Shown here piece after piece: positions 23,101 to 53,810 of a stretch of DNA of 64,000 nt. The notes beneath the pieces were generated by a model. That model did no database searches, had not been told where the DNA came from, and was given only the letters and a program-made list of their open reading frames with translations. Origin of the DNA: Takakia lepidozioides (taxonomy: Eukaryota > Plantae > Bryophyta); contig CM060734.1 of assembly GCA_030704615.1 (NCBI GenBank), positions 38,130,001 through 38,194,000 of the forward strand. Direction: 5' to 3'. Position 1 is the first letter of the stretch. Every line of letters begins with the position of its first letter. The translations under genes and the position numbers were made by a program.

Positions 23101-23557
23101 CATTTCTTTCAAAGAGATAAAGAAATATGGAAATCACGAAATGCACAAAGAATCCTATGTTTCCAGCTTAATACATACTCTTTATGAACCCCATTTTGAT
23201 TGATTCACGACATTAACCCCTAAAGGCCGGCGCGACCCGAATCGGGTCGCAGCCGTTTTCATCCACGGATAGCTTCCATGGATGTACTTGGATGACAAAA
23301 ATCGCCGAAAGAAAAGTAAGCGCGGCGCAAGGTTGCACACGTCAGTGACGTCACGTCATAACAGACCTGACACTGATGCGACCAACGTCACGTCAGTTTT
23401 GCCGAAAAATCAGTAAAACGTGAATTAGGTGAAAAATATGCCACGTAGGTGGATACATTGTATTCCAAGCGACACCTTGGCAAGTGAATAAATTGTTTTA
23501 TAAATTATTCCATCCTTCAGTACTTGAGGTCATTTTTAAATAATTATTGTTAAATTG

Positions 23558-24050
23558 GTGCGACCTCCAAATGTTGGTGGTCGCAAAATTTATCTTATTT
23601 TTTAATAGTTACGACCACCAGCAGAGGGGTGGTCGCATCATTTTTGTTTTTTTAAAATAGATGCGACCACCAGCAGGGGTGGTCGCATTTTTTCCTTTTC
23701 TTAAACAGTTGCGACCACCGCTACTGGTGGTCGCATAATTTTTATTTTATTTGTAATAGGTGCAACCACCATCAGGGGGGTGGTCGCAATATTTTTTTGT
23801 TTTTTTAATATCTGCGACCACCAGCATGGGGGTGGTCGCAACATTTTTCTTTTTTTTAATATGTGCGACCACCAACATGGGGTGGTCGCAACATTTTTCT
23901 GATTTTAATATCTGCGACCACCAACATAGGGGTGGTCGCAACAGTTTATTTTTATTTTTAATAGGTGTGACCACCAGCATGGGATGGTCGCAACATTTGT
24001 TAATTAATTTAAATAACATGCGATTTCCTCGTGCAACCTAGGGCGGTCGC
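23558..24050 (+). repeat. Left-arm array of ~9 palindromes GCGACCACC-N5-9-GGTGGTCGC with T-rich spacers, ~51-bp period
   Basis: Units at ~23560, 23611, 23663, 23711, 23762, 23814, 23865, 23914, 23967. Confidence 0.9.
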
Positions 24051-24419
24051 AGCATTGGATTCTGATTCGTCGAGCGTGTGAGGCTTGGAGGCTGGAGGGT
24101 ATATAAGGTGGTCACAGTGCCCATCACTTCTTTTGTGACAAACAGTTTTGTAGCGAGTGAATGTTCTCTATTCCTTGAGCAAGAGTGTAGCCCAAGATGA
24201 GGGTGCGGACCATTTGTTGTTGTGGCTTCCATCAGAGCCACTGCAGCAAATTATCGTAAAACACAATACTACATGGTGCATTGATCCACTTGGATTGATG
24301 CCGTAGTGTTGGGCCATTACATTCTGTTCTGCCTTCTATTGCTCTTGACAAATCTATCAAGTACACTAGTGTTCTTCGTTCAACCTTGAGTCTGTGGTTA
24401 GGGTTTTGGGTGTGAGGAT

Positions 24420-25800
24420 GAGGGAGGAGTGGATCCCTTGGTTCACGGTAGACCCGCACAAAAATGACGGTGTTCAATGCAATCTCTGTGCATTGAAGCT
24501 GGTGGGTTGCAAAGATCGCATTTATATCACCTCGGCTACAGAGATGGGAAGAATGTAGGGATTAGTTTGTGCCCAAAAACCTCCATGCGAGTGAAAGCCC
24601 ACTTTGCCCAATGTGGAGACAATATCCCACCGTCTCTTGATGTGGCCACGGCTTCTGAGCCAAACACTCCATGTTCCAATCAAAATGCCTCTCAGAGTTA
24701 TACCCAGGGGGATTCTTGCGAGGCGTCTGCTGTTCGTGGAGAAGCCGGTGGGTCATGAGCAACACCCAATTGTACGCCAGCACTTATACGGACCAGACCA
24801 TTGAGGCAACAATCAATGCAAAAATGCTAAATTTGTCACACATGAGGACTCTGGATAAGAAGTGGGCCCAATTTTTCTACGAGGCCAATATTCCGTTCAA
24901 TGTCTCGAGGCTTCCTGCGTTTATGGCTGCTGTCAAAGTCACGTCCGATTCCAAGTCCACGTACACACCTCCGAGTTATCGCGATCCCCGCACATGATTG
25001 CTAGAAAAGACTATGTCTGACCTCACCCAAAAGGTGAATGAAAAGACAAGTGATTCTCTCCGGAAATATGGAAGCACTACATGTCCAGACGGTTGGAGTT
25101 ATGTTACTAATCGACCATTGTTCAATGTTATGCTGGTCTGTCCTGCGGGGAAACATTTTTTGGGATCCGTTGAGACAAGCGGGGAGAGAAAATATGCACG
25201 TTATCAAGCAGGGTTATTGACGAGTTCATCGATACCATTGGAGCTGATAAAATTGTCTAATTGTGCACGGACAATGCATCTAACATGGTTAATATGGCCG
25301 ATATTTTGATGGTACGATATCCCCATCCATATTACTAAGGGTGTGTTGTTCATATCTTTGATCTCATTTTGGAGGATTGGGAAAAAGAATCATGGATGAA
25401 ACAGCTAGTAAAAATGACAAAGTTTCGAGACAGTTCCGCTCCAGTCCCATACGCTTTGCAATGGGAGCTAATGTTCTTGCTCCAGCTCCAATCAGATCCC
25501 ACCATTCATGTGGCAATATGCTCATTGTTTTTGGATCCGGCATGTCATGGAAAGAATTCTTACGATCCGAGAAGCACTGGTACTTGGACAAAGCAGTTAC
25601 TGTCTCGAGTGGGCGAGCGGAACTGGAGCAGTTACTCGTTTGTTCACAACAAGATTCACAACAGGTTTGACAAATTGGTTTATGTCTACACGAATTGTAG
25701 GATACTGCGAGAGAGGACAGCAAGTGACGTATCTGCATGGTACGAGAAGACTCTGTTGTCTGAAGAATCTGCCTCAGAGGTCTCATCTAGCAGCAATGAT
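24420..25800 (+). pseudogene. hAT-family (DUF659-type) transposase, frameshifted and internally deleted
   Basis: KKWAQFFYEANIPFNV..PAF, YTPPSY, DGWS..TNRPLFNVML, F..SVETSG, C..H..L.LED, and dimerisation-type ERNWSSYSFVHNKIHNR..KLVYVYTN. Part of the C-terminal region (PHEWWDLIG...LAPIAKR) lies inverted on the - strand (ORF 25364-25786). Confidence 0.85.
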
Positions 25801-26987
25801 GACACCGATGCCGCGAGGGACTTCGACTCCGACGGTTGGGATGGGTTCGATAATGTCGGCAATCCTCCACCTGACCCATATGATCAATTGCGGACCCCAT
25901 TCCATCACTGGAGCACACTCTCAATAATGAAGTTGAGGTCAACTCTCCCCCACCACGAGTTCCACGGACTGTGGGAGATGTGCAGGTCGAATCGTCGGAT
26001 GACAATCGGCCATTGTCATTCCTTCACCGACGTCCTGCCCCTGTGAACCGTGCTTCATCTCACGCCGCTCCATCTCATGTTTCTTTCTCAAGCCGGTCCA
26101 TCCCATGCTGATCCATCTAGTCTCTCTCCTCCTCATGTAATTCCTTTCATCGTTACTCCGATCCTGGGAGATGTTTCTTATGCTGCGGGACTTCTACAAG
26201 TCAATCCATCGGATGACGACGATCGGCCATTGTCGTTTCATCTGGCCCGACAACGTCCGTATGTGAACCGTGCTCCCTCGACCCTCACTGGTCCATCTCA
26301 TGCCCCTTCCTCTCATGTCGGCCCCTTTGATGTACGTGCGAGTAGTCTTCCTCATACGAGACCTACTCCAAGGCCACCATGAAATCCGGGACAAGCCCAG
26401 AAACGGCAGCGAATTGTGCAACCTTTTGTTGGTGACCGACCTGTGAACAGGCCTGATACCCTATATGGTATTCATGATAGGAGTGGAAATTGACTAGAGA
26501 GACAACTGAACGTACTCCGAGGATGACTACAGGTCCAACGGCTAGTCGCCTCTAGAAACGAAAGAACAGATGGAGATGATGATTCCAACACTGATCATGG
26601 GAACGGGGTGAAGTGAGTGGGGACGAAGATTTTGTACTGGGCGTGAGAACATACCATCATCGTCGTGCCAAACGGAATTAGGTACAACTATAACTTCTGT
26701 CACATGATGTGTAGTATGTTTCCATGGATATCCATGTTTCAGTTTGGGTACATGCATACGTGTATAGAAATAAAAATGGTGGAATATGTATACCCAAGAA
26801 AGGGTTTGGTGATTGTGTGTGTGTTTGTGTTTCGTCGTTACCTTTACATTGTTGATTTCTTATTATGGTTTCGAAAGCCACAAAGACCAGATGCAGCTCC
26901 CAACATTCATCTTCCCATTCACAAATCCATGGGAAGTCGATACATGTGCTTTTGATCTGCCTCTCCAAACATACATACAGGTGCAGG

Positions 26988-27400
26988 GGGACCAACCTCC
27001 TGGTGGTCGCACCTATTTAAAAAAAAACAATTGTGCGACCACCAGTAGCGGTCGTCGCAACTGTTAAAAGAAAAGAAAAATGTTGCGACCACACCCCTGC
27101 TGGTGGTCGCACCTATTTAACAAAAAGAAAAATGGTCGGACCACCCCTCTGCGCAGCTATTTAAAAAGGGAAAATTCTGCAACTACCCCCTTGCTGGTGG
27201 TCGCCCTTAAAAAAAATGGTGCGACCACCCCCCTGCTCGTGGTCGCAGTTATTAAAAAGAAGAAAAATTATGTGAGCACCCCCCTGCTGGTGGTCGCGCC
27301 TATTAAAAAAACGAAAAATTCTACGACCACCCCCTTGCTGGTGATCGCACATAATTAATAAATAAATAAATGATGTGACCACCCCCTGCTGGCGGTCGCA
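26988..27400 (-). repeat. Internal inverted copy of the palindrome array (~9 units, A-rich spacers)
   Basis: 27031-27150 is the reverse complement of 23620-23740, including the variant unit GCGACCACCGCTACTGGTGGTCGC. Confidence 0.88.
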
Positions 27401-28147
27401 GCTATTTCCAGCATGCGTAGTCATGATGACAGTGCGCGCCCCGAGTGTGGAAGGGCCTTCGAGGCCATTCTCTCCCTCACTTCTCTCCGCACCAGGACTT
27501 GGTGGGCGATGGGATGTTGCATTCCTTGTTGTTGAGTCCGAGTGGGGAGGGGTGCTATTGGTTGGGTGGGGGGTATTTTTGGACGTTGGTTTCTACGAAA
27601 TCGATGTTGAGTACCTCCCGGGAAGCCCTCCTCTGGCACCCACGTTTTTTTCATTGCACATTGCGTCATATCACTTAGAACTGCAGAGGGAGTGACACAT
27701 GCCTCTAGTACTTGGGGAGGATTCATTAGGGAGTAAGATTAGAGGTTAGCTCTTTCATGAGCATGAGCGGCATGAGCGGAGTAGCAAGACAATCGGTTTT
27801 CATGAGCAGAAGTACAAATTTTGAAAATAAAAAACATTATAAAACATTAATTTAATGGAATGTGTCAGAAAAAACAAATATATTATTCGGCACCTTGAAG
27901 GGGAAATTGTAGTTTTGAGAGTTGTGCTCATGATATTTTGTCTTCCGCTCATGCCAATTCCCAGCGACATGTGCAAAAATGGCGCCAAATTTCGCGGTAA
28001 TAGGGTCCGTAACTCTCCAAGCCTCCCGGGATTCCACGTGATTGGCTGTTCCCACAGCATCCGGTTCTCCGACCTTCCCAAACTGCCCAAATGAATTGGT
28101 ATACATAGACTTCTCATCATAGGTTAACCCTTAAACTAACAAGCTGT

Positions 28148-28250
28148 TTTTTGGTGGGCCACCCCAAAAGACGGGTATAGCTCCATGGATGAAGGGAGAT
28201 ATGTTTGGTGGGCCACCCCAAAAAACGTATATAGCTCCATGGATGAAGGC
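28148..28250 (+). repeat. ~55-bp direct tandem duplication
   Basis: tttggtgggccaccccaaaa.acg..tatagctccatggatgaagg occurs twice. Confidence 0.8.
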
Positions 28251-28481
28251 ATATCTCCCTGGCCCCAAACATCAAGGTAAATGAATCTTACAACTTCCAT
28301 CCTACCTACTACATGTTCCTACCTATAGGGAGCATATAAGATGACCATTAGTGGGGAGCCATTAGTGGGTATATGCTCCCGGTAGTGGCCATTAGTGGGG
28401 CCATAAGAGATTGCCTTCCAGTAGGAAGGTGGCACCTTTGTAACAATTTGAACCCACAACCACTCATAAGAGGGTATATAC

Positions 28482-31622: not shown

Positions 31623-33425
31623 TCAACGTTTCGTCCGCTTTTGAGGTCGCCCTTCGAAAGCTGCAACCGCCTCGGATGCGTTTCCTATTTCCAAGGCACG
31701 CACCCAAGTTGCCTCTACTTGATGATAGCCCTTCCATTTCACGAGATACTCCGTTTCTCGATTCTTGAACCTCCTCGACTTAAGCACTGCCTCCACCTCG
31801 TACTCAGGTTCATTTTCATAATCCAACAGCACAAGTGGTGGACGCAACACTTGATGCCGATTCGGACACGCTTCATCTTTGAAGTAAGGCTTCAAAAGGA
31901 AGACGTTGAATACCAGATACACCTTGTTGTTTGCCGGCAGCTCCAATTCATACACATCCTCATTCATAACCTTCCGGATGCGAAAGGGCCCCGCATACGA
32001 AGGTACGAACTTCGGACTCACTTCCGGAGGTAGTCAAAAATTCTTGATGTTCAACCAGACCTCCGTGCCTGCCTCAAACTTAACTTCCCTCCGCTTCCGA
32101 TTCGCCTGCCGTTCATACCGTTTCCTAGCTTTGGCAATGTTGTACTTTGCGAGCTCCAACAAACGCTCACGTTCTTCCAGCACCGCTGCTGCTGCCGGTT
32201 CCACAACGTCCTGGGCGGCCCAACTTGTCGGCACCAGAGGTGCTTTTCCATAGACCAATACGAAAGGGGAAACTCCTGTTGTGGAGCGTTTTGTGTTATT
32301 ATAACAATACTCTGTCGCATCCAAGTGCTCCACCTAGTCTGATTGGTCTGCCGACACATAACTCCGCAAGATCTGCTTCACCACGGAATTCACTCTTTCC
32401 GTTTGGCCGTCCGTCGTAGGTTGGAAGGCGGTACTCATCTTGAGCCTCATCCCCATTTTCTTCCAAAGTGCCCTCCAAAATTTACTTATAGACTTTGGAT
32501 CGCGGTCCGAGACAGTATCATTCGGAAGTCCATGATGCTTGAAGACGTGGGCGAAGTAAAGTCGTCCCGTCTCCTGCGCCATTGTCGTCTCCTTAGTGGG
32601 AATGAAATGGCCCATTTTACTAAATCTATCCACCACCACCATGATTGTATTGAATCCTCTTGATAGCGGTATAGCAGTCATGACATCCATCGAGACACTT
32701 TCCCAAGACCCCTCTGGAATCGGCAAGGGTTGTAACAGCCCCGCTTGCTTTTTGTACTCGTTCCGGTTTTGTTGGCATGTGGTGCATGTTTTGACATACT
32801 CCTTGGCCTCCTCCCTCAATTTGGGCCAGAAATACTCTTTCTTCAAGAGTGCCGCGGTGCGCTTTGGCTCCGCCGTGGCCTGCAAGCGGGCCATCGTGGC
32901 ATTCTCTCAAGAGACTATCTCTGATCCCTCCTTTTAGCACGTAGAGACGCTTTTGCTTATACCGGAGCAGTCCATTGTGCAAGTGGAACTGCGATTTAAT
33001 CCCCAACCTCAAGTCCCGCATCACGGCCTTCGTCATCTCATCCTTTCAGTAAGCCTTCCGGATCTTCCTTTGGAGCGCTGTCTCGCCCCTTACACTAACA
33101 TGAGCTGTTGCTTTCTACTGAAAGCATCAGCCACCACATTGTCTCGTCCCGGTTTATACTGGATATCCACGTCGAACACTGACAAAGTGTCTTGTCACCT
33201 AAGTTGTTTTGGGGACAACTTAGGCTGTGTGGCAAAATACTTCACCATGACATTGTCTGTGAACACCTTCACCGGGTTGGAACCAACATAGTGGCGCCAA
33301 AGCTCAAGGCAATGCACCACCACCTTCATTTATTTCTCGTGCGTAGGCCACCGCCGCTCCACTTCATTCAGTTTCTTACTTTCGTAAGCTACTAGACATC
33401 CATCCTGCATGAGCACACCCCCAAA
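31623..33425 (-). mobile_element. Ty3/Gypsy chromovirus pol remnant (RNase H, integrase, chromodomain), 5'-truncated, nested in the giant element
   Basis: GGVLMQDG..VAYESKKL, IQYKPGRDNVVADAFS, ECHDGPLAGHGG, YFWPKL..YVKTCTTCQ, VVVDRFSKMGHF, TDGQTERVN, GPFRI, EYEVEAVL..YLVKWKGY..EATW. Stops and frameshifts are present. Confidence 0.92.
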
Positions 33426-34719
33426 TGAGAGCTCATATTCTGTCAGTTGCCAACGCAATTCCATCAGTGACGAAGGTCAACGAAGGTCAACACGAACATT
33501 TCAATCTGCCCAACGAACCTGCCCGGAAAAATTAAAATTTTAGAGTTTGAAATTGAATACAATATCACATTCCAAATGACAAAAGAGCCACCTTCGTTCA
33601 ACTTAGGTCCAACAAATTTATATTTTCACCTGCATCCCTGAACATTTTTGCAGCACACGATAAACCAAGGTAGAGATATAAATGGCTAAAAAACATGCAG
33701 ATTTCTTCCACGTACATGCAACCTAGTTTCGAATGTTGCAGTGACCAAAGAAGCCATAAAGAGGGTCACCTTCGTTCACCAAAGGTCATAGTCGATAGCT
33801 GGGCAACCCAAGATGTAAAAAATAGGAGGGCCGAAGGTACAAGCTTGACCCGGTCGAGTGTGATCAAATTCGGAGAAATCGACGGTGGGAATTCACATGC
33901 ATCTACCATAGGGCACAATTGATAAATGTAACAATAGAAAACGAGAGACCCTCGTACACTCTGGGTCATGTCAACTGCATGAATGGAATATATCTCTACA
34001 CAATGACGACCAAGGAAAAAACAAAATGCGACAAAATGGAAGAATGCATTAACTGGGGAATGCAGTTTTGAACATTCGAGGAGATGGGAGAATTTGACAT
34101 GCTTCATAAATGTAACACAGGTGGTAACAAATTGCAAGTATTTGACAAATATCTTCTGGGGTTGTGTCATCTGATCTTATACACCACAACAAGCAAGGAG
34201 ATCACATCGGACCTGGGATTAAATAGCATTATTACCCATTTTTTTGAAATGTGACATGTATGGTCCCAAAATGTAAATATCCCAAATGTGATGAAATGTG
34301 CTATTCAGAAGTATCCTCAGATCCCAAATCTATTACACAGTCGGGCAAAACATCGACTGAGCTTGTGCCCATACTACTGTTGGACATGTCACATGCCTCG
34401 GTAGCCTCGTCCAGAATATAAACATAACTATCATTCCCAAATAAGGACTTCTTCCGTGTCCAGGTGATGGTGTTATCCCACTCCTTGTCGTGATTTGATG
34501 CCGCTTGTCTTTGGGCTGCCACCTCTGCATACATTGGGAGCTCCGGAAACAATTGTGGGCTCAAGGCCAACTCAACGTCGTAGGTATACAATGGTCCTCC
34601 CATCCTCCGCCTCTTCACGACCGGTTGCCTGAACATTTGTGGTCATATGGTCAAAACCACATACTGAATGGAAACGATTAATACAGCAACGTTGCAAGCA
34701 GGGTAATGAAATGACTCAC

Positions 34720-35672
34720 TCACAAATCGCCCTCGCCATCTGATCCGTCCACAATATATTTGACCGCAGACTTTTGAGGAGGTTGCAAAGCAGCTCGTCT
34801 TTTCTTCTGACTGGAATCATTCAATCGCCGCAAAAGGTCTTCAAACAACTCTTTGTCCCCCTCCATTGCAACGATGTGTCTCCCGGATGTACTTGCCGCT
34901 TTCACCGAATTCCCTACAGTAGTAATTTAGACGGAATGAGATCCAGTGAGATGCAGTGTAACTGTTAAAGCATAATACCTAGGAAGCCAAAGCCAGAAGG
35001 CGCGATATGATGAAGGTTTTACAAGACAAAAAGTGTAAAAATGCCTACAAGCCAAACATATCCATAAATTTGTTAGAACTCCATATTGAAGGACCTCTGT
35101 CCCTAAATTGCTCACCTTGAAAGAACCGCAACTATTTGGACTCTTTTGGATACACGGCCACAGTCTGTCATTGCAAATGCCCAATCACCAGATAAGAGGA
35201 GGAATGAGAAAATATTACCTGTTGATGCCGTGATATCCAAAACCCTCGCACCCTCATAGGAACATAACTCCATGAGTGTTTGATAGAACGCAGGGGATTT
35301 TTCTTTGCGTCCTCTGTAAGGGTTGCCTTCGGGTGATACTGTCATCTCAGATGCTGGAAGATAGTGTCTCAACAGATCCCCGGTGAAACAATCCGAGTTC
35401 TTTGAAAAAGAGACCTTTGTTCACTGATCTGAAAGTCCTTGCAGGACTCCAGCACCAAACAATGCACTTCGAAGACAAATGTTTGTGCACATACAGAGGA
35501 AGGGAAACAGATTAGCACTCCAACAAATACCACCACAAGTGATGGAAATGTAAATCAAAAGGGAAATAGATTAGCACTCCAAGGAACACCACCACAAACG
35601 CCTGAAATGTAAAGCATAAGATCTCACCTTCCCTGTGTTGCAATTCAAAGCTTTGTCATTGATGCATGTCCA
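34720..35672 (-). pseudogene. 3' half of N4/N6 DNA-methyltransferase-like gene 1 (exons ~35672-35628, ~35490-35219, 34913-34720)
   Basis: PYRGRKEKSPAFYQTLMELCSYEGARVLDITASTG|NSVKAASTSGRHIVAMEGD resembles the K.P..l...S.eg..VLDpF.GSGt..AA..lgR..i..E signature of PF01555-type methylases. The GT-AG intron 35218-34914 restores the frame. Confidence 0.72.
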
Positions 35673-39090: not shown

Positions 39091-39279
39091 CTGTACATCA
39101 TGATTGAATAAACGTTGTTTTCAATTGTGTTTGTCTCGTACCATCATGTGTTAATGGTTTGTTACTTGGCCATAGCACCTAGGTCCATCATATGGGATAA
39201 TCAAGCACCACACCCACGAATCTTGACACTCGCAAAGTTTCAAATCAATCTAAAATCATTTGGCAAGGGAACAATTGGT

Positions 39280-40047
39280 TCACCCATTGACCCGGTGTAC
39301 ACTGTGTGCCGACTCAGGCCCAGCAGGGACACGTCTTTTATTTCTCTTCTCCTCCGCTTTCGCGTGCAGATCTTTCTCCGATTCGTCAACAAGTCCGCCA
39401 GACATGTCTAGGTACCACGGGCATCCAACGAGATGCGCGACATGCCATTGTTTCTGCATGTTTGGTAGGTAGACACAGCTTGGGCCCGCCACGGTCCAAG
39501 CCATGAAGAACGGTGGCTCTTGAGCCAGGGCCCCTGTCTTAAGAAGCACGTATTTCATATACCTGCAAGACAGTCAGCATGCGTGAGCACAAGTTATGAC
39601 CATGTATTCGCAAAGTGCAACCGGAAAGATAAAGTGCGAATGCGGTGCCGCATTTCCTAGACAAACCTCATAACCCAGCTTTTGCAAACAACGGGAGCTG
39701 GGCTTCACCTGTACATAATTCACATTGCAGCTTTTCCTGCCCCCTCCTGGTGTGTAAACTCCATGCTCCTTGTTGTTGTTTGCAGCTCCTTGGCGAAGAG
39801 GTTGTCCTTGTACGCACATCTGAAACGTGTCACGTAATCTTCCAATGTCTGTGTTCCATCCCATTTAACGTACAAGCCGAACGAATTTGTATGCATTACG
39901 ACTTGCTCCTTCGCATTCGTCATTACCTGCGTTTCCAACATGCATGTCACGTAGCAATTCACGGAATTCATTCCAGCAAAGCAAAGCGGGGGAAGTACCT
40001 TGAATTACCTGGAACCACCAAGTCATGCGGTTGAGCCACACATCCAA
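39280..40047 (-). pseudogene. Spliced continuation of the kinase-like gene (middle exons)
   Basis: Exon-like frames LDVWLNRMTWWFQ|gtaatt, cag|VMTNAKEQ...FRCAYKDNLF and cag|..YMKYVLLKTG...HLVGCPWYLDM, with canonical splice signals. Confidence 0.5.
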
Positions 40048-40052
40048 TGCAG

Positions 40053-41928: not shown

Positions 41929-42061
41929 AATTTTAATTAACTCTCTGTACATTTACATTCTCTTCCAGAGTATATAAAGGAAATTCTCCCCGTCCTTGAT
42001 GTCCCCTCTCCCATGTGCTTCTAAAGGACACCATCTTCCAAATCACGTCCTTCCCAAAACC

Positions 42062-42673
42062 GGAAATGCGGCACCGCATTTCCATAACCGGGGCAAGAAC
42101 AATTTTTCCGTTTCCTGGTTTGGACATCAGAAACTGTTCGGCCGAACGGAAATGCGGTGCCGCATTTCCGTTTTCGACATGGAAGTTCTGCCGATTGCCA
42201 CCTCCTTCCATGGAGGTAAATGGAAATGCGACACCGCATTCGGAGGTCGAACAAGTTATTTACATGGCTGACATGGAAATGCGGTGCCGCATTTCCATTT
42301 TGGAGATGGATGTTTTTCCAATTCCAGACCCTTCGACGGAAATGCAGCACCGCATTGTCCAATAAGAAATTTCGATGACGGACATGGAAATGCGGTGCCG
42401 CATTCCATTGTCGAATACGAAATTTTGATTACGGACAGGGAAATGCGGTACCGCATTTCCAGAACGGACACGGACACGCATTGGCGATTGGACATGCGTG
42501 GACAAATCAAGGTCCAATATGGAAATGCGGTGCAGCATTAGGATTTCGAAGTATGGAAATGCCATGTCAAGATATGAAATGCGGTACCGCATTTCCGTTA
42601 CGACCACAACAGAGGAAAGGGAGCTGCCAGAAATCGCTGCTTGGAGAAAAATGAAATGCGGTGCCGCATTTTC
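42062..42673. repeat. Array of ~10 palindromes GGAAATGCGG(T/C)(G/A)CCGCATTTCC with variable spacers
   Basis: Copies at ~42062, 42148, 42222, 42275, 42338, 42386, 42439, 42521, 42576, 42653. Single copies lie in introns at ~39637 and ~40750. Confidence 0.9.
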
Positions 42674-42948
42674 GACCTTGGGCATGGAGATGTTTCCTTT
42701 TACTCATACATGGATTTCCTTCACCGCAGGACTCTGATATCGCTGACTCTGATATATTCATGTGGACAGACACATTGTAGAAATGAGACCACAAATTGTA
42801 AACAGTGGGCCAATTACTGCAGTTCTTGAATACAATGAAACACAGCACACAAAAGTGAGGGACGATGAGTTGTTTTATTGATCGAACACAGTGTCTCACA
42901 ATTAGCAACTCCAGACAAATCTAAGCCCTTCTACCTTCTGCATGGGCG

Positions 42949-43848
42949 TCACCAAGTCGACGGAACTTCGATAGCACTCAAAACAAGCTCATTACTGATG
43001 CGACACCTCCAAGTAAACTGCAATGTGGTCGTTCTGGTGCCCTTGGTGGAGCTGACGACAATGTCATACCCATCAATGATACCACCATCATACATTGACA
43101 AGGTAACTGTGGGCCTCATGTGCCCGTGCGATTCGTCTTTGCAACTCAGCCGAATGTCTCCATACACTGGAAGAGCGGAGTGAACTCCACGAATATAGTT
43201 TTCCCCAGTGCCGTCCTCCCTGGTCCACTGGCAGCAGTTCCAGCGCCAAAGCAAGGCCGTGCGTGATCTGTCCGGCATCCTATTCCAGCTCGGTATATCG
43301 AGGTCAACAATTTGCAGCACCCACGGACCGCATTGACCCTCGCCCTCACCTTGCTCAAAGTGGTAATAACCCTCCAAATATTCCATTGTGCGCAAAGACT
43401 CCCGCTTGATTCCAGAAGCGTCAGTGAAAACAGAGAGCCACACAATGATGTCTCCTGATTCTGGTTTGAACATCGCATAATCGTGGCCATGATAAGGGCA
43501 ATCAGCAGGATTGCGGCGGCATGACATCCTTGCAAAAGATTAGCGGAGTATGCTCAATGACAGCAACTCGCGGATAGAGGAGGCAGCAGCGCGGTGGCTG
43601 GAAGAAGTTCAAGGACATGACAATGTGTTGCAAACGTTGCAATTCCTCACTAACACTCCAGGGCACATTTCAATTTCCCCCCAACAGGAACCTGCACGGA
43701 TGAAGATTGGTTGCTCCATGAATGTAACCGTTTCAGTTTCCTTCCGTGCCATGCAAACTATGGGCAGTAAGTGCCAGGTGGGCCTATAGCCACTCGAGAC
43801 AACGAAGTCCATCCCCCCTTCGATGTAAATGCGGCGCTGAATTTCCAT
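42949..43848 (-). pseudogene. Unknown protein, paralog B (interrupted)
   Basis: ORF 42949-43527 aligns over ~190 aa with ORF 43947-44663 (DYAM..SGDI..W, GPW.L.I.D.D.PS, RTA.L.RWNCCQWT, P.YGDI, DGG.I.G.DIVV, QFTWR..ELV..A.EVP.T). Confidence 0.65.
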
Positions 43849-43946
43849 CCGGGGGATGGACTTCGGTGGCAGATTTCAAACTATACCCTGTGGATGAGAA
43901 AGAGGTATAGGTTCATCCACCGCTGGCGTGATGAACACGTTACACG

Positions 43947-44663
43947 ATGATTGGTGGGTACATGGGACCGAGATGCTCCATTATTGGAGCCCGCACTGCT
44001 CTTCCGCTTCTCATTATTTCGAAAATCAAAGAGCTTCCTTGCTGTCCCAAGGTCATTGTCATCGACATCAAAGACGTCCTAAGGTCCTCCTTTGCAAGGA
44101 TGCCGTGCTTCCGGAACCGGGCTGACTACCCTTATGGAGGCTTTGATTATGCAATGTATTCGGCCACATCGGGAGACATCGTTATCTGGCACACAGTTTA
44201 CACAGAAGATAGTGGTTCGAATGTGGAAACATTGTCCGCTTTTGAGTATATCCCAGGCCACTACGCCTTCGAGCGGGGTGACGATCTTGGTCTAAGGAGT
44301 CCGTGGCTCCTGTGCATCCTTGATTCCGATTTTCCTAGCTACGACGGGCACCCATGCAGAAGAATGCGCACTGCTATGTTGTTGCGGTGGAACTGCTGCC
44401 AGTGGACGTGGGTGGACTCCATTGGAGAGACGTATACTCCTGAAGGAGTTCGCTCCTCTTCTCCATTGTATGGGGACATTTGCATTGGTGTGGACGACGA
44501 AAACGTGAAGCTTTCCATATTCGATGGTGGTATGATTGAAGGGCATGACATTGTGGTGAACATCAACAGGGGCGGTACAACGGCTGCAATCCAGTTTACC
44601 TGGAGGAGCCCGATGACTCATGAGCTAGTTTTCAGAGCAGTCGAAGTCCCATTGACAACGTGA
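43947..44663 (+). CDS. Unknown intronless protein (~238 aa), paralog A
   Basis: Open ORF with a clear diverged paralog in inverted orientation next to it. No family recognised, and the start codon is uncertain. Confidence 0.6.
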   Translation: MIGGYMGPRCSIIGARTALPLLIISKIKELPCCPKVIVIDIKDVLRSSFARMPCFRNRADYPYGGFDYAMYSATSGDIVIWHTVYTEDSGSNVETLSAFEYIPGHYAFERGDDLGLRSPWLLCILDSDFPSYDGHPCRRMRTAMLLRWNCCQWTWVDSIGETYTPEGVRSSSPLYGDICIGVDDENVKLSIFDGGMIEGHDIVVNINRGGTTAAIQFTWRSPMTHELVFRAVEVPLTT

Positions 44664-45128
44664 CTTGTATTCAGAAGGCACAGGGCTATAGATTTGTTTG
44701 CACCATCAGTACAGTAGACGTGCTTCAAATGCAATTCATGTGGATCAATAAAAACCCCCTTGTGCCCTCTTTTTTGTTCTATTTTGTATCCATCGTTCCC
44801 AGAATGCATCATTCCTCATTTCGTTTAGGATTGGGAGTGGGGGTGGATTTCGCAAGTGGTTGGTAGGTTGAAATGGCCCCCCATTGTATAGAGCAGTATA
44901 GCAGCCCCCCTTTAATCTGTACCCACCTTCGGTTGACGGAGGTGACAGTGTAGCCGTAATGACAGGTAGAATATAAATTATTTGAGTCCATTTATATTTA
45001 ATTTCAGTCTATTGATTCTACACTATAGTACATAATGTCGATAGACTAATCATATTGTCTATATAATTGTTGTAATGTGTTATACGACTATTCCAATGTA
45101 AAATCTTTAGACTACAATATACATGTAT

Positions 45129-45132
<4 letters not shown>

Positions 45133-45198
<66 letters not shown>
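45133..45198. repeat. (TA)n microsatellite
   Basis: ~33 TA units. Confidence 0.98.
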
Positions 45199-45203
<5 letters not shown>

Positions 45204-45936
45204 CACGACGTAGATACGGATTAAGTCTACGAATGTCTGTAATCGTGTGTAGTCATTTGCATACATAGTTTTAAATGCTATTCATCTTTGCTTTGGCCTT
45301 TAAGCCACCTTCGTTTTAGGGAGGTACCCTAGATTTGGAGGTGCGCAGGGAGCTGTGTGGCCCTAATGTCAGTACTACATAATGTTAAAATATTATGTGA
45401 TATGCAGTGACAGTTTAATATCTACGAAATATGTGATATTTAATCTATATTCTATGTACTGCTAGATGGATTAGTCATGACTAGATGATTATGACGAGTA
45501 ACGTGTATACTTGTGTTGTATTAGTGATGATTAATGATCCATAACTGATCCATCATATATATGCTATGTTATGATATCTGTATGTATCTCTCTGACTATG
45601 CAGATAGAAATCATATGATATGGTAATCAGATATATAAATTTTATTTAAATCTACACACTGTACACTAGTCTGCCGGCGATCAGCATCCGTCCTAGCAGC
45701 AGATATTTGCTATATTCTTTAACCTTCGTTTGACGTAGTGGGCAGTGGATGGGCTCGATTGACTGCATGGACCTCTGTATACCAACTTTTACAATGATGT
45801 ACATATTATAAGAGGAGCGTACACGCAGATTAACCTCGTATTGTCGTTGTCTCGGGTATCTTCTTGAGGTTCATGGAATTGATCATCTACCTTTGTCGCC
45901 GAGGCTTGGACGACTGTTGACAACGACATAATTACT

Positions 45937-46803
45937 ATGTACACAGCCGACCAGTCTGGGAATATCACCCCTGTTTGTGCATCTCTATGCCCCTGGTATC
46001 TGGACTACCCTGCCAAGGAAGGTCCGGTTGGTGAGAGACAGAAGATTGCTGCAGAGGAGGCCAAGGTTGGTAAGGACAATCCGACTGGGGCGTCCGATAC
46101 TGAGAATACCCAGCGACAACAACGACGTCGAGAGGCCCTCAACACCGCAACTGCTTTGGAAGATGAAAAGATTGCAGCTTTGGAAGCTGAAAAAGCAAAA
46201 AACAAACGGAGATAGTACATCACAGTGGGCAAGAGGAACAAGGGAGACAAAGAACAAACTGCATCTGATCATGGAGAGTCGAAACTTGCAGGAAGTGCAA
46301 ATGACGGAACCTAGAACAAGAAGAAGAGAAGACATAGTAAAACTAAAAGTGACGACATGGTCTGGGCAGCCAGGTACATTGGTTCTTCTTCTGCTGCCCC
46401 GGATTCCAAGGTTTTGTGTTTGCAGGGGGATGTAAAAACATTGGCAACCCTCATTAAATCCGAGAAGATGGAAAAGAAGTCCTTGTTGTATTCAAACTCC
46501 AAGTTCCTTGGTGATGTCGAATGTGAGAATACTGGGACACGTAACCTTGAAACTGCGGACATGGTGTTCTGCGAGCTTCCGGACGGTCACAGTGTCGAGC
46601 CTGTTGATCCGTCATTGACCCCCTACGATGATGATGTCCCAGAGTGGAATGAGTATTCTCATGAGAACATGCTTCACGCATTTGAGATAGCGTACCAACT
46701 CATGGATGATAATGGTTGCTTCATTGTTGTGGCGCCAAGTGATTTGCGGACGTCGATATATAGGCACATGAGGAAGAAGCAGATGAGACTGTTCAGGACG
46801 TGG
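45937..46803 (+). pseudogene. 5' half of N4/N6 DNA-methyltransferase-like gene 1, cut by the CACTA
   Basis: ADMVFCELPDG...PEWNEYSHENMLHAFEIAYQLMDDNGCFIVV...RLFRTW is homologous to gene 2. It ends exactly at TGG|CACTA. Confidence 0.72.
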
Positions 46804-49800
46804 CACTAGAAGCATTCGTGTCTTTTCCGAATCGACTGCATGTCCAAAACCACTGAGGGAACAACTTTGAGATGTTTGTTACTACTGCACAGTCGTAACG
46901 GATAAATTCGCATTTCTAATGGCGGATAGAAGTTGCATCAACGACTCCGCAGTTGGCGCAATATTCGCGTCGATTTAATTCAATTACGTAAATTGCTTTA
47001 AAAAAAAAAAAAAAAAAAACAGCAATTACAAGTGGTTTTAAGCACTAGAGAACGACTCTTAACAACTAGGCATTCATTGCACACCCTATTTAAAAATGGA
47101 ATTTTTATAAGTGCTCCACATAGCTCATGACGTGGAATATTTTAATGTATTTTAGGGCTTGTGTGGCTCGTAGAGATTGTTCTAATCGTCGGATGTAAAA
47201 TGATCTAAGGGTGGAAGAGTAACTTTGTCCTTTGCCTGAATTTGTCTAAGTGTTGGGAGAGGGATGGAGGCTTGAGAGAGAGACGAGCAAGTGATGCGAG
47301 AAGTATGGAGACCAAATCGAGGCCCATGTCTTGTTGTTGCAAGCGTTTATGGCGTCAAGGGCGCATTATGTGCAAATATGGGCTCTTGGCTTCCCTTTGT
47401 ACCATGATTTGGTATTCTTCCTGATGATCACAAGGTTCTTGGGGGAATCAGCTTGGTCTTAGCAGCCCATATTTTAATCTCTGCCCGCTCAGCTGCACCG
47501 TGGTGGTTCTTACAAACCAATCTCACATTACCTGACTACAGTTTCAAGCAGCACGCACAAGAGGTCTTCTTGGGTTCATGGTCAGTCTAATCCGCAATGG
47601 GTCATGACACAAGGTAGAGGACAATGTGGTGAGGGCAACGTCTTCTTCGAGCTATTTCAGCCTGTTTTGCCGAGATGTAGTGTCGTGGAGTGCGATGCTT
47701 GCAGGGTATGCACAGCAGGGACGTGGGATGGAGGCTTTGGAGACCTATGAAGTTGCGAAGGAGAGTTTGATAACATGGCTGAACGAGATGTTGTCTCAAG
47801 GAACACGCTGAATCTCGCAAGATATGGCTAGCATGTGTGCGGGATGAGGGCATTGGAGACATATGAGCAAATGTTGCGAGAAGGGGTGCAGCCTGACTGG
47901 GTCACGTTCATTTGTGTTTGCAATGCATGTGCAAACCTGGCAGCCCTGGAGACTTGGTAAAGGGCAAAGAGGTCCATCGTGACATCGTCAAAGCTGGAAC
48001 TGTACCAGATGTAACAATACCTCGTCGACATGTATGCCAAATGTGGGAGCATTCCCTTGTGGACAAGGAGTGTTCAACAATATGGCTGAGTGAAATGTGG
48101 TGTGGTGGAACGTGATGATCACAGGACATGCACAACATGGGCGGGGATTGCGGGTTTTGGAGACCTATGAGCAAATGATGTGGGTCTAGGGGGTGAAGTT
48201 GAGCACATTACGTTTGTTTGTGTTTGTAGTGCATGTACGAGCCTGTTAGAGAAGGGCAAAGAGGTCCATGGTTGCATCGTCAAAGATGAAATTGTGGTAG
48301 ATGTCATTCTGAACATGAATACCCTTCTGGATAGGGAGTGTTCAACAATATGGCTGAGCAAAATGTGGTGTCGTGGAAAGTGATGATCGCAAGACATGCA
48401 CAACAGGGGCGGGGATTGCAGGTTTTGGAGACCTATGAGCAGTTGATGTGGGAGGGGGTGAAGTCCGACCACATTACGTTCAGAGAGTTCAAATGCCTCT
48501 CCACCATGACCTTGCTTAGCTAACCATGCCTTGCTGATGTTGTTGTCTTGCACTTGAGTTGTTTTTGGACACTGGCTGGAACATCCACAAGGCGGCTCTG
48601 CTCGAGAGAGAAATCAGCTTGAATGCATGGGCAGATTTTGAGATCACAATCACCACTCAGAACGCTGTTCTTTGCACCGGCATGGCATGTCAGCATGCAT
48701 ATCAGCCCAAACTCATTACTCCATGAGCCTTCCACTGCCGGAGTGTGCCCATTCAAGCCAGATCTTCGAAACGCAGGGATGGAACGGGGTTTTGAAACCA
48801 GCATTGCCCAACTGGATACCCAATTCAGCTCCACATCTTGGTCCATTAATCTGCTGCACATTGTGAAGTTTGCTGCCCGTTCACCGCAAGTTGAAGAAGG
48901 AGTATTCTTAAAACACGGGTACTCATAATCTGAAAATGGCTCCAGCTTATGTTGCTTGAGTGCGAATATGAGTGTGGTTGGCTTGGCAGCTTTACATCTG
49001 GTCCATCCCACTCGATATGATGAGCAGGTTCAGCTTGACTTCTCTCACACAAAAGACGCTGCCAAGATGGGGTTTGCTGCCCTACTGTCGTTGTTCTGGG
49101 CTGCAACATACAATTAATCTGGCCCATGGCGAGGGGCCTTGCCTTCCACCAATCATCTGTAAGTCCTGTGAAACTGTTTTTGTGGCAATTTGTAAGCAGT
49201 GGGTAGCGATGTGGGCTGTTGTAGGATTTGATGAACTCAATGCCGTGTACTGACAGCAACCCCTCATCTCTTATGCAAACATTCAACAAGCCAAGTTGAC
49301 TGCAGAGCATATTCAGCCCCCCACGTTTCTAGTTGCCTAATGTTCTTCATCTCCTAGGCAGAGCATTTCCAAGGTCTCCATCTGTGATGACACACTATCT
49401 TCTCATGTGGGTTCAGCTTCTGGTCTTGCTCTTGTTTTGCACCACCCCAATGAAGGGCAGTTCCCACCTGCTTGATTCTCTCCATATGTTTGTCTTGGCA
49501 GGGTTTCCACAACCGCCTTTCCTTTTCAGACTGCCAATCATCAGCCTCGTTCTCCAATGCTTCACTTTCTTCCCAAGTGAAGTGCTCTCCTCTTTTATGC
49601 TTCAACGTCCCTGCAGGTGTCTTTTCCTTCATCTCCCGTGGTGCTTTCGAATGAATGAGCACTGATTTGCATGTGTTGGCAACACTTACGGTGTCCCTTT
49701 CCTTGCATGCCACTGCAGGCCCGTCATTGACTTTCTTGGCAGGGAAGTCTCCTCCTTCTCCCTCATTTTCAGCTCTGTTGGTGCCCACTCACCATGCTAT

Positions 49801-49874
49801 CAGGGCTGCATTATTTCGTGTGTGCGCCAACCAAGGGCGATCTTTCACTGGTCCGATTGTTGGCAGCAACTGAT
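46804..49874. mobile_element. CACTA element, part 2 (other terminus plus captured gene fragments)
   Basis: The identical 19-bp TIR CACTAGAAGCATTCGTGTC at 46804 follows TGG. Contains PPR fragments. Confidence 0.75.
47626..48500 (+). pseudogene. PLS-class pentatricopeptide repeat gene fragments (captured)
   Basis: RDVVSWSAMLAGYAQQGRGMEALETYE, REGVQPDWVTFICVCNAC, GKEVH..IVK, DMYAKCG. Frameshifted. Confidence 0.85.
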
Positions 49875-51150
49875 TGGAGTCTTCTTGTACAGCAACTCTA
49901 TTGTGTTTACACACAAGTTTTTCAGAGCCGAAGCAAAACAGGTTCCAGTAGACATATCGTTGAATAGGCTTGCATCGAACGTGTTACCCTCATTTATTGC
50001 CTGGGTTATTTTCCCAATTGTAAAGGTCTCTGATGGCACGGTTAGAGGGGGCCTACGAGGTATGTCATCTGACTGGTTGTTGGCAATATTATGAATAATT
50101 GCAATTTCAGGTGTAATCCACCATCTATGTGCGAGAGTCTTTATCATCTTGTCTCTGCTCTCGAAAATGTACAACGTGGTTTTTGGGTCATCCGTCGTGG
50201 AGGCATCCCCCAATCGCATACCCCAATTACACCTCTTCAGACCTTTGTGAAAATGCAATGCAACAGATGTTGTCAGGGGACATGTCGTTGTGCAAAGGTG
50301 TGATTATGGATGGACATTGAGCATGATGTACAAAAACGCCCATGCCAATTGGGTGCGATTCTATTGGAATTGAACCAGTCGGTTGACCTCCTGTATTTCC
50401 TGATCCGTCCTTCGTCGTTCCATTAACTCCATGTTATCCCGATCATTCCCCCATTTCCTGTCGATACTCAACCATGATCGTATTTCCCCCCCCATCCACA
50501 ATGTGTTTAATACCTTATTTCGACGTGGATTCAACGCAAAATACTTTATGATAACCGAAATGATGGAACTTTACAACCAACGCCTCATTGTTATGTTGGA
50601 CTTTGGTAAGCTTGACATTTGTTTCCCTGGGCGTTTTCTCTGCTATCTCCTAGGATGGAGGAATGAATTAATCCCCAACCCGTCTAACCCTCCGAATTAT
50701 ACCATACCCTCCACGTTTGGGCGTGTCGAGTTGTTGTACTTGTGCGTTTGTGGATATGTATCTCACGTTCAATGCCACATCCGCGGACGAGGACCCTGCC
50801 TTCCATGGGAGTGATTTTGTACGTCGTTTGGCGTGGGCTTTTGCCATGTCAGATCACCAATCCACAAACAACTCTCCTCCGAAGTTGGCATGCAACCTTC
50901 AGCTACATGTGTTCTCGTAACAAACTTGTCCATGGTTTGCCTCAGATTCTATGTAGCATCATGGGCCCGGTCTTCCATCCATTTCGTGAACTGGAAGTTT
51001 ACCCTGTCCTCCTCTTATTCATCCCCGGCCAAAGCCTCCCTCATTCTCATCTCTATATTGTGCTGGAATCTAAGGAAACCCTCATTCCTATGTGGGACAT
51101 ACAAAAGATTTAAACGCATTATGTCATTGTCCTTCAAATAATCCAGCACT
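49875..51150 (-). pseudogene. Protein-kinase-like gene, 5' part, degenerate
   Basis: Manual - strand translation gives RGGYGIIRRVR (~50715-50683, Gly loop), LAWAFLYIM, LHNDMSPDNI (50295-50266, catalytic loop), CNWGM (DFG/DWG position) and RWWITPE (APE position). Frameshifts and stops are present. Confidence 0.68.
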
Positions 51151-51669
51151 ACTTACTTCACCACCTTCACTGCCTCTGCACTTGGATAGTTTTTTTGTTG
51201 ACCTGACTCTCTCGTTCATGTGCATGTTTACGCTTCCTACCTATACGCCCATTTCCCGAGGAACCCCCTGATACTGCGTTCGAAGCAATGTTTCCGGACA
51301 TGATGAAAGTACTCTGCGGAATAGATGCGGCTTCGTATCGGAAACTACACCCAGACTATTTGATAACCTTATATACTAGCGAAACAATTTCCTCACCCTC
51401 TATTGGTATAGAACCCAAAGCAAACTATCTCCCGCAGTCCCAGGGAAAAAAAAGCAAAAACTCCTCTCCCACACAAATCCACTTCCCCCCCCCCCCCCCC
51501 CACGGCTCAGTCCTGGCCACCAGAGTTGAAACTCCAATAAGCCCCAAAACCGCACTCACAGAGAGGGAAAAAAGTGGGTTGGGAATGGGGGGTAGGCCCT
51601 TATATACTACCTGGAGAGGCCTGCTTTGAGCGGCACGCGACCGCCTTTGTTGCCCATTCGTGCCTCGCC

Positions 51670-52168
51670 ACGTGACCAGGTAGTGGTCGCACCTATGGGT
51701 GTCCGCAGCTAATAACAAAACAAAAAATCTACCGCGACCCCCCCTTGCTAGTGGTTGCACTCTTAAAAAACAAAACGAAAATGTGCGACCCCCCCTAAGC
51801 GGTCGCACCTAATAACAAAAAAGAAAAATTCTACGACCACCACCGGCTGGTGGTCGCACCCATTTAAGACATAATTAAAAATGTGCGACCACCCCCTGCT
51901 GGTGGTCGCACCTATTTTGAAAAAATGAAAATGCTACAACCACCACCTGCTGGTGGTCGCACCCAATTTAAAAATAAATAAAAATGTGTGACCACCCTCT
52001 GCTTGTGGTCGCACCTATTAAAAAAAAATGAAAATGCTGCGACCACTACATGTTGGTGGTCACACCCATTTAAAAAATAACTAAAAATGTGCAACCACCC
52101 CCTTCTGGTGGTCGCACCTATTTAAAGAGAAGAAAATTGTGCAACCAACTGTTGCTGACGGTCGCATA
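51670..52168 (-). repeat. Right-arm array of ~10 GCGACCACC...GGTGGTCGC palindromes, A-rich spacers, ~51-bp period
   Basis: Units at ~51672, 51734, 51785, 51834, 51885, 51937, 51987, 52039, 52091, 52141. Confidence 0.9.
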
Positions 52169-53810
52169 ATTGACGATATAAATCATAATATATGAATTTT
52201 ACAGATAAATAATGAAGTCCATGTAATGAGGCCACATCGGTTGCCATGTCGGTTCTCATAGTAAATAGTCAATAGTAAAGTAAAAAATAAACATAATTAT
52301 GTACAGTAACGTCCGTTTTGGACGTGACGTGATGCTCGTCCGTCGCTGACGTCAGACGTGACGCTGATGCATCAACGCCACGTCACATCCAAATTTGCAA
52401 CCAGGGCGCAGCGTGGAGCTACACACGAGGGAATTTAATGCGCCCCCATCGGACAAAATCTCAAGCCGCCACAATTTTTCTAAGCCCTGGAATCCATGGC
52501 CAAGGCCCATTGATCTGCCACGTGGCAGGTAACTGTGTGCACCCATCTACACTTGTACTTTTGGATTTTTCTACGAACAAATTCACATTCCTGTTCACCT
52601 TTGGGCATTGCAGGATTGCACCAGAGAAAAGTGCATTTGGTTACAATGTGCAGGATCTATGTAACATTTTCTATGTCACTGCCAAGTGCACCCCCTAATT
52701 GCACATACAAACCAGCTAGTAGATTTTTTTGGAATTTGCCTCCAATTTCATGCGGAGACCTCTAACCCGGCAAGGAATCTGTCTAAGTTGGTCCGGGACT
52801 GAGCAAAAAGATTGTGATGGTAAATTTCCTTGGTCAAAGTGATTTTTTCTGTCCATATTTGCTTGGACTTGATAAATCCACCATTGTAAATCGTTATAAT
52901 CTCCCTAAATGACGGTCATTTCTACTGAAATTTGATCAGTACCTCCGTGGAGTAGGTAAAAACCAGTTAGTACGGCTCAATTCCCTGGATGAACCCCTGC
53001 TGGCTGATACGGGGTTATTCATGACAGTGGGTCCCATTTTTGGGATGTTTTCCAATTTGGCTCCCGGCGCTTAGGGATTAAACTGGTGGAATGGACAAGA
53101 TCTCTTAGTAAGAACAACATATCTTTCTAGAGTACAAACGGTTAGAGGATGCACCCCCAGGCTTCTTTGTCCATCTACTTTTCCTCAATGACATACAAAG
53201 CCTTGAGCACTTCAGGCTCTACTCCAAAAATTGGTGGCCTATCTATCTCCAATCATGGCCCCCTTTCGTTGTCATTTTACTGTACGCTCAATCAAACGCT
53301 TATCCCTCTGAGATACAGGATGAGGCCACTGGCTAAGGATGAGACATGGTCAGGGGCAGAATTGGTTGAATTTTGTCGCCAGGCTCCCCTGGAATACAAG
53401 GAGCTGGTAGCTTACATGTGGGCAGTGGGGCAATTGAAGATTAATCCTACCCCGGCAGTAACCATTGTGATGGGATGCCCAAGTTTTTATATTGGCAGTT
53501 ACTTGTACCAGATGTTCGTGACAATGAGGGGAAGCTAGCAGCGCTATGAGAGTATTGAAAAAGATACTCACTGGGAATTACCCAAATTCCAGCCACCAGA
53601 GAGAGTCGCAGGCACTTCAGCATATATGAATAGGCCACTGTATGCTGAAGCATGGCACCAGGCGAAGGACCACTTTTCACCATTGGTCTTGGACAGAGAC
53701 CACCCTTTCAGAGAAACAAGGGTCCAAACTGTTAACTGGTTAATAGGCAGCAGGGCGACTCAACACATTACCCCCTGGACCAAGGAGGAGCTGCAAACCT
53801 ACTGTCAAGT

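Follow-up and report, generated by a model that had tools for sequence, protein, structure and literature searches.

A decayed nest of transposons in Takakia lepidozioides, possibly built on one outer element with TTAA ends

Is a stretch of about 30 kb that begins and ends with TTAA in the genome of the moss Takakia lepidozioides one giant transposon, or the product of several mobile elements that came to lie within one another? The stretch occupies positions 23213–53081 of a 64,000-nucleotide window (GenBank assembly GCA_030704615.1, contig CM060734.1, positions 38,130,001 to 38,194,000 of the forward strand); "window" refers here to the whole of that DNA, and all coordinates are given within it. 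An earlier reading made from the letters alone (the sequence-only reading) had described a giant cargo-carrying element equipped with a kinase and DNA amino-methyltransferases. We arrived at a different picture, in which the stretch is a decayed nest of plant transposons on one old outer DNA transposon, termed E1. This is the most economical model, and we hold it with about even confidence. It keeps the outer element first proposed, together with its mirror-image arms and its methyltransferase-like accessory genes, but the interior is a nest.

The notion of one 30-kb cargo-carrying unit had to be abandoned because of that interior, in which a nested CACTA element (E2) accounts for at least 6.4 kb, a Ty3 fragment is present, and the gene order has been reshaped by a 10.9-kb inversion. 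The features concerned are:

31623–33036, minus strand: Ty3/gypsy integrase and chromodomain fragment, a nested retroelement remnant with no pair of long terminal repeats
34301–35420, minus strand: 3′ half of gene 2, with the motif I region and an acidic tail
35673–38997, plus strand: left part of E2, with its terminus CACTAGAAGCATTCGTGTC at 35673–35691 and the flanking triplet CCA
38998–49884: inverted segment of 10,887 bp
45937–46803, plus strand: 5′ half of gene 2, with the CPWYLD piece and the motif IV region (ELPDG), which stops exactly at the CACTA terminus
46804–49884, plus strand: right part of E2, now inverted, with its terminus at 46804–46822 and the flanking triplet TGG

The two 19-nt termini of E2 at 35673 and 46804 are identical and both lie on the plus strand, where none would be expected by chance, and their flanking triplets are reverse complements of one another. 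The 5′ half of gene 2 runs right up to the terminus at 46804, without a gap, and the terminus at 35673 is 250 bp from the 3′ half. We undid the inversion of 38998–49884 by script and read the junctions from the sequence so obtained. In that sequence, the CACTA ends are inverted, 6,407 bp apart, and bounded by the target-site duplication (TSD) CCA/CCA, and the two halves of gene 2 are rejoined on the minus strand around E2. Both new junctions are in frame, one within the open reading frame (ORF) of E2 (...DGSSWE joined to EDSNQLL...) and the other within gene 1 (...ELLYK joined to ENVVKRF...). In X5, a sample obtained independently, a contig that extends from 49885 rightwards runs on leftwards for 27 letters that are the reverse complement of 39024–38998. 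Taken together, these observations show that gene 2 was interrupted by a non-autonomous CACTA element of 6.4 kb, and that a later 10.9-kb inversion broke inside E2 and inside gene 1. Since the de-inverted junction is in frame, gene 1 starts at the TATA box of the right arm described below, runs left to 49885, and once continued into what is now 38998–41928 on the plus strand.

We class E2 as non-autonomous because Pfam detected no TNP2-type transposase in its ORFs. Its CACTA termini and 3-bp TSD are those of non-autonomous EnSpm/CACTA elements, but it is unlike them in carrying, without any TNP2-type domain, an unknown ORF rich in lysine and glutamate. This ORF has a weak match to DUF2921_N (E 7e-4). 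Logan contigs aligned to 48400–54300 (5,901 letters) indicate how widespread the family is. A 2,880-nt contig from X5 is about 97–98% identical to the E2 part over 48400–49887, and the contigs of the source sample that fall on E2 have word depths of 1,500–2,700, compared with about 30–60 for single-copy contigs, contig depth not being the same as copy number. The E2 family thus looks young and very abundant.

The kinase of the sequence-only reading is a composite of two pieces, namely, the ORF of E2 (48.5–49.8 kb) and the N-terminal part of gene 1 (49.9–51.5 kb). The latter is a single feature:

49885–51560, minus strand: frameshifted N-terminal part of gene 1, formerly called "kinase-like", with no kinase feature

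A six-frame scan of 23–53.5 kb revealed no HRD, DFG, or glycine-loop kinase motif, and Pfam searches of about 20 ORFs of 46.8–51.6 kb returned no kinase. Likewise, phmmer against PDB, Atlas, and a homologue search of the region provided no support for a kinase and no homologues. A single-sequence fold of the presumed protein (pLDDT 36) was unusable. Many paralogues of gene 1 differ from the window by losses or additions of single bases, and we therefore regard the window copy of its N-terminal part as frameshifted; a contig from X5 is 93% identical to gene 1 over 50354–51621, and the gene has abundant copies with 91–93% identity.

As a single element, E1 would be bounded by the TTAA sites at 23213 and 53081, which we consider about as likely as not. 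Each arm would comprise, from the outside inwards, a short terminus, a block of ACGT motifs, about eight copies of a private 23–26-bp palindrome (P1), and a TATA box. The corresponding features are:

23213–23216: left TTAA, a candidate target-site duplication
23217–23250, plus strand: left terminus CCCCTAAAGGCCGG, then a terminal palindrome GCGACCCGAATCGGGTCGC with GCGACC/GGTCGC half-sites as in the arrays
23339–23395, plus strand: left ACGT-motif block (23321–23395 with GCGCGGCGCAAGGTTGCA), with GACGT/ACGTC repeats
23544–23998, plus strand: left P1 array (23544–24050 at its widest), about nine units with T-rich spacers
24100–24108, plus strand: left TATATAAGG (TATA box), pointing inward
26996–27407, minus strand: middle P1 array, oriented like the right array and opposite to the left
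51598–51606, minus strand: right TATATAAGG (TATA box), pointing inward
51735–52147, minus strand: right P1 array (51637–52165 at its widest), inverted relative to the left
52309–52385, minus strand: right ACGT-motif block (52309–52413 with TTTGCAACCAGGGCGCAGCG)
52414–53077, minus strand: right terminal segment, moderately repeated, like the left only in its last 14–18 nt (CCGGCGCTTAGGGA)
53078–53081: right TTAA

P1 has the form GCGACCACC-N5-8-GGTGGTCGC and recurs at a spacing of 51–52 bp in the three arrays. The left and right arrays are homologous in inverted orientation, homology between the ACGT blocks is partial, and each of these arrays is followed at a similar distance by a TATA box, so that on both sides the array lies between the terminus and the TATA box. 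The mirror-image arms that had been described are therefore sound with respect to the ACGT block, the P1 array, and the inward TATATAAGG, but not with respect to their outer ends, which are asymmetric and not significantly alike.

The TTAA at both ends and the imperfect terminal inverted repeats that had been reported are present. When the 18 nt inward from each TTAA are read, TTAACCCCTAAAGGCCGG on the left and the reverse-complemented TTAATCCCTAAGCGCCGG on the right agree at 15 of 18 positions without a gap. When the 2.3-kb right zone was shuffled with the left end held fixed, 1.8% of the shuffled sequences gave a match of at least 15/18, and the match was equalled in none of 48 control windows of real sequence. 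Among all TTAA pairs of the window, 0.1–0.2% agree at 11 or more of the 16 positions beyond the TTAA, and 0.04–0.09 such pairs are thus expected among the 40 pairs of the two zones. The terminal match (p about 0.02–0.09) suggests something better than chance, but is not decisive. The ends also have inverted repeats of the piggyBac type, CCC.../...GGG (CCCCTAAAGGCCGG compared with the reverse-complemented TCCCTAAGCGCCGG), and a palindrome with the GCGACC/GGTCGC half-site of the arrays is located 15 nt from the left TTAA.

Inward of the left arm lies the remnant of a transposase gene:

24370–26043, plus strand: hAT-type (DUF659) transposase pseudogene, with a zinc-finger-like start, DUF659, TDNASN, GCVVHIFDL (CxxH), and an ERNWSSYSF C-terminus

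The DUF659 match at 24998–25309 (E 5e-8) scores 33.2 bits, just below the cutoff of 34.7, and the hAT motifs listed are readable, the last of them continuing from ERNWSSYSF to LVYVYTN. The C-terminal ORF yielded no homologues in the homologue search. The gene is a pseudogene because it has a nonsense codon (TGA at 24995–97, within a conserved stretch), frameshifts, and an internal deletion that removed about 200 amino acids. The left arm does, as was noted earlier, point into an hAT/DUF659 transposase, but the gene is dead. The discord between the type of end and the encoded transposase, also pointed out in the sequence-only reading, is real as an observation; it comes, however, from a single copy, in which the TTAA duplication is uninformative since TTAA is itself the target.

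Genes 1 and 2 are the source of the proposed DNA amino-methyltransferase cargo. In addition to the pieces already listed, the relevant features are:

40035–41126, plus strand: methyltransferase-like domain of gene 1, comprising an exon at 40035–40703 (motif IV, DIPDG), a GT..AG intron at 40704–40799, and an exon at 40800–41126 (motif I, LDLICGTG)
42060–42670: P2 array, about 11 copies of GGAAATGCGGYRCCGCATTTCC spaced by about 53 bp, downstream of gene 1

The two genes are real paralogs, if divergent ones (25–37% identity). An in-frame stop in gene 1, at 40749, proved to be no lesion, as it falls inside the intron and the exons stay in frame. We searched the spliced or restored gene models exon by exon, and an exhaustive search identified no more than 16 relatives, among which two are of full length, P0014 (729 amino acids) and P0016 (487 amino acids). 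Common to the relatives is DLIxxDLPTG..VPxWN..DDxG, followed by RSPAF...LD.GCGT. The order of motifs is that of the beta class, with motif IV ahead of motif I and a loop of the FxGxG type for S-adenosylmethionine: in gene 1, DIPDG is upstream of LDLICGTG, and P0014 and P0016 are arranged likewise. The catalytic (D/N/S)PP(Y/F/W) is replaced throughout, by DIPD in gene 1, ELPD in gene 2, and DLPT or DFPT in the relatives, and these genes contain no DPPY-type motif. Searches of Pfam (PF01555 included) and of PDB sequences gave no match, in the case of Pfam even for the full-length relatives. An AF2 model of residues 225–487 of P0016 (pLDDT 67, pTM 0.62) had M1.HpyAVI, CcrM, and M.BceJIV as its top Foldseek matches, with a probability of 1.0 and E about 1e-4 at a TM score of only 0.3–0.4. 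Judging from this model, the proteins probably have a methyltransferase-like fold, resembling that of N6-adenine methylases, and are probably not working amino-methyltransferases. A toolkit that modifies chromatin or DNA, as had been envisaged, is doubtful because the catalytic motif has been replaced.

The N-terminal 480 amino acids of P0014 matched nothing significantly in the window, whose copy of gene 1 has a frameshifted N-terminal part. The P2 array is the second palindrome array noted in the sequence-only reading; single copies of P2 occur besides it at 39639 and at 40752, the latter within the 40704–40799 intron of gene 1. The 2.3-kb contig that encodes P0005, a protein that resembles the N-terminal part of gene 2 in containing a CPWYLD-type piece, holds no palindromes. 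We also considered whether the minus-strand ORFs at 39.7–40.1 kb might be gag-like, for which Pfam gave no support.

With these results at hand, the strict form of the sequence-only reading, in which one giant TTAA transposon of 30 kb has a kinase together with DNA amino-methyltransferases, the whole forming an integrated toolkit for modifying chromatin or DNA, can be assessed. The TTAA and CCC-type ends, the mirror-image arms, and the methyltransferase-fold genes inside would all suit it. Yet none of the searches described above disclosed a kinase, the 6.4-kb CACTA insertion is independent and has its own TSD, a Ty3 fragment is also nested there, (D/N/S)PP(Y/F) has given way to DIPD or ELPD (DLPT in the relatives), and the hAT gene is dead. 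We consider the strict form very improbable.

A number of observations weigh against E1 itself as one element. The evidence comes from one copy, as no second copy of an arm, no empty site, and no other TTAA-flanked insertion was obtained. Gene 1 carries P2 and the arms carry P1, so that one element would contain two sets of palindromes. Among about 60 ORF pieces of 24–51 kb, the piggyBac transposase (PF13843) is absent, which leaves room for a non-autonomous member. Nor is there an 8-bp hAT duplication: when the left zone was compared with 27.4–28.3 kb or 52.15–53.3 kb, zero pairs combined a duplication of at least 7/8 with a repeat of at least 10/12. Outside the ACGT block the arms are asymmetric, with 105 nt to the TTAA on the left and about 665 nt on the right, and we rejected homology between these outer segments, given that their colinear alignment is not significant (p about 0.22). 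A further CPWYLD-containing piece, at 39280–39558 on the minus strand, resembles the N-terminal parts of gene 2 and of P0005 and runs antisense to gene 1, within its presumed 1-kb intron; it may be the relic of a third copy of a helper gene. Two remaining points, a drop in contig depth on the right and the position of the middle P1 array, each belong with a rival explanation.

The first of these points concerns the right end. Thousands of contigs align to 48400–54300 at 80–100% identity, and most of that stretch is therefore repeated in the genome. Their summed word depth drops about tenfold near 52.40–52.42 kb, which is 650 bp inward of the proposed right end, and at 53081 itself there is no such step. 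The real ends of the family might be placed at the outer edges of the ACGT blocks, at about 23320 and about 52415, with the TTAA sites belonging to unrelated flanking repeats and the end match arising by chance. The homology of the arms does stop at GCGC..GGTTGCA on both sides, one paralogue boundary (52424) is found beside a TTAA at 52426 close to the depth drop, and TTAA followed by CCCT occurs four times in the window, which is about the number that chance would produce. At about 23320 and 52415, however, neither an inverted terminal repeat nor a duplication was found, whatever the length, the palindrome with array half-sites next to the left TTAA lies outside the boundary so drawn, and the terminal match has the low chance probability given above. 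We think that ends at the ACGT blocks are unlikely.

The depth drop itself could not be upheld as a clear family boundary at 52.4 kb, for the per-position counts of contigs disagree with it and depth is unfit for such use. From the arrays to 52960, variable positions are covered by 6–15 contigs each; at 53220 only 3 remain, and a separate repeat piece begins at 53092. At least four paralogous contigs with differing internal deletions link 52.85–52.91 kb to the last 30–60 nt before 53077 (53.02–53.05 kb) and continue for 20–54 nt. The DNA immediately inside the right TTAA is therefore part of the repeat that also includes the sequence 200 bp farther in. Besides 52424, paralogue boundaries within the right terminal segment fall at 52579, 52825, and 52996. 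As far as the contigs go, a right end at 53077 appears compatible with these data.

Other termini of the same general type are found in and around the stretch. TTAACCCTTAAAC, which points right at 28124, and AAGGGTTAGGGTTAA, at 19875–19895, are further cases of TTAA with CCCT-type termini; such termini are no more numerous in the window than chance predicts, but these two could be ends of small piggyBac-type elements. At the right end, CCCTAAATGACGG (52903) and CCGGCGCTTAGGG (53065) match at 10/13 positions in inverted orientation over a distance of 175 bp, and several paralogues are deleted between them. The segment 52903–53077 may be a small TTAA-type miniature inverted-repeat transposable element that supplied the "right terminus", its left flank not being TTAA. 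We also considered Kolobok, whose ends are 5′-RR..YY-3′ (PMC9587614), unlike the ends seen here.

The second point concerns the middle P1 array, which might itself represent the genuine right arm of a short hAT element. On this account, two members or fragments of one P1 family stand head to head: the first would be a short deletion derivative consisting of the left arm, the dead hAT gene, and the middle array (23217 to about 27.41 kb, its right end lost), and the second a copy truncated on the left that consists of the helper genes and the right arm. The end match would be typical of the family or due to chance, and there never was one 30-kb insertion. The middle array directly follows the hAT gene and runs opposite to the left one; the two arrays share a rare unit variant with the centre CCGCTACTGG; their longest matches (80–85%) exceed those between left and right (75–78%); and the 7 kb past the middle array is unrelated material that includes the Ty3 fragment. 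Set against this, no ACGT block, terminus, or TTAA/CCC end adjoins the middle array, the mean identity of units does not differ among the three pairs of arrays (0.73–0.74), and two outward-facing CCC termini lie, correctly oriented, just outside both arms. We regard the two-member account as somewhat unlikely, and return here to the model of one outer E1.

Between the arms of E1 there is also a pair of unknown ORFs:

42949–43527, minus strand, 192 amino acids, and 43947–44663, plus strand, 238 amino acids: diverging intact ORFs that form an inverted duplication

This is the paralog pair of the sequence-only reading, and it was found as described there, with 50% amino-acid identity. The two ORFs have a dS of about 0.84 and a dN/dS of about 0.46, and were therefore kept as coding for some time. 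Neither a search of 5.8 billion proteins nor Pfam gave a match.

More general searches of the locus were negative. An Rfam scan of 22–54.5 kb gave no match, none of 10 window ORFs was found by exact-sequence look-up in the protein collection, and a metagenome scan for the array pattern returned only three chance matches, from high-GC bacteria. Beyond the right TTAA, 53719–54502 includes a tandem duplication with a unit of about 345 bp (53811–54157 and 54158–54502, 91% identical), an extremely abundant repeat that has the top contig depth of the aligned stretch. Further on, an ORF at 57127–57651 on the minus strand has cytosine-C5 methyltransferase motifs (SWPCQGHSSAG, ILENVP) and adjoins retroelement sequence.

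How might such an element have worked? In our model, the left arm would drive the hAT-type (DUF659) transposase gene, now dead, and the right arm would drive gene 1, a long helper gene with a methyltransferase-like C-terminal half. Gene 2, which is shorter and also methyltransferase-like, and the ORF pair would sit between the arms. The outer E1 would have come first, followed by the insertion of the CACTA element into gene 2 and finally by the 10.9-kb inversion. By analogy with known systems, the P1 and P2 arrays are predicted binding sites for a protein encoded by the element, either the N-terminal part of a helper or the transposase. Binding to the palindromes would allow E1 to recognize its own ends or promoters and to activate or protect its own copies, with the methyltransferase-like fold serving as a non-catalytic or altered module. 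E1 would either have entered its TTAA site through a mechanism of the piggyBac kind provided in trans, or have ends that are atypical for an element encoding an hAT transposase. Protein binding, effects on methylation, and transposition are what we infer for E1.

Classical piggyBac elements have ends of the form CCC...GGG. The ends of E1 resemble these in having TTAA on both sides and termini that begin (C/T)CCCTAA and end TTAGGG(G/A). They differ in the one extra base between TTAA and CCCTAA, and in addition no PF13843 is present in the ORFs tested and one insertion has been seen. With hAT elements (Ac/Ds-like, with subterminal transposase-binding repeats), E1 shares the DUF659/hAT relic with its CxxH and C-terminal motifs and the inverted subterminal repeats on both sides. 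Unlike them, it has no 8-bp duplication and no YARNG-type terminus, and its repeats are 23–26-bp palindromes rather than hexamers.

In its logic of an accessory protein combined with repeated motifs of its own family, the closest published analogue would be that of the VANC anti-silencing proteins of the Arabidopsis VANDAL elements, which are Mutator-like. VANC proteins are encoded by the transposon and act on short, family-specific motifs found as tandem repeats in non-coding sequence of their own family (PMC5735166, PMC10398659). The likeness does not extend to sequence, in which VANC is unrelated; moreover, the motifs described here are palindromes at a fixed spacing of about 52 bp, and their binding is putative.

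A bolder proposal can be built on the same elements. It envisages a single transposon that encodes an hAT-type transposase and yet integrates at TTAA with piggyBac-like CCC...GGG ends, either as a hybrid or undescribed lineage or as one mobilized in trans by piggyBac, and that uses two private sets of palindromes together with helpers of altered methyltransferase fold to recognize and de-repress its own copies. We consider this proposal quite improbable.

By itself, the locus is a dead, rearranged copy. It nevertheless provides a clean and internally dated series of events, from the outer element through the CACTA insertion to the inversion. If the ends hold, it would place a module of helper genes and palindromes in an hAT-type context with TTAA ends, which would favour the idea of a mobile cassette for self-recognition or anti-silencing that crosses transposon superfamilies in early land plants.

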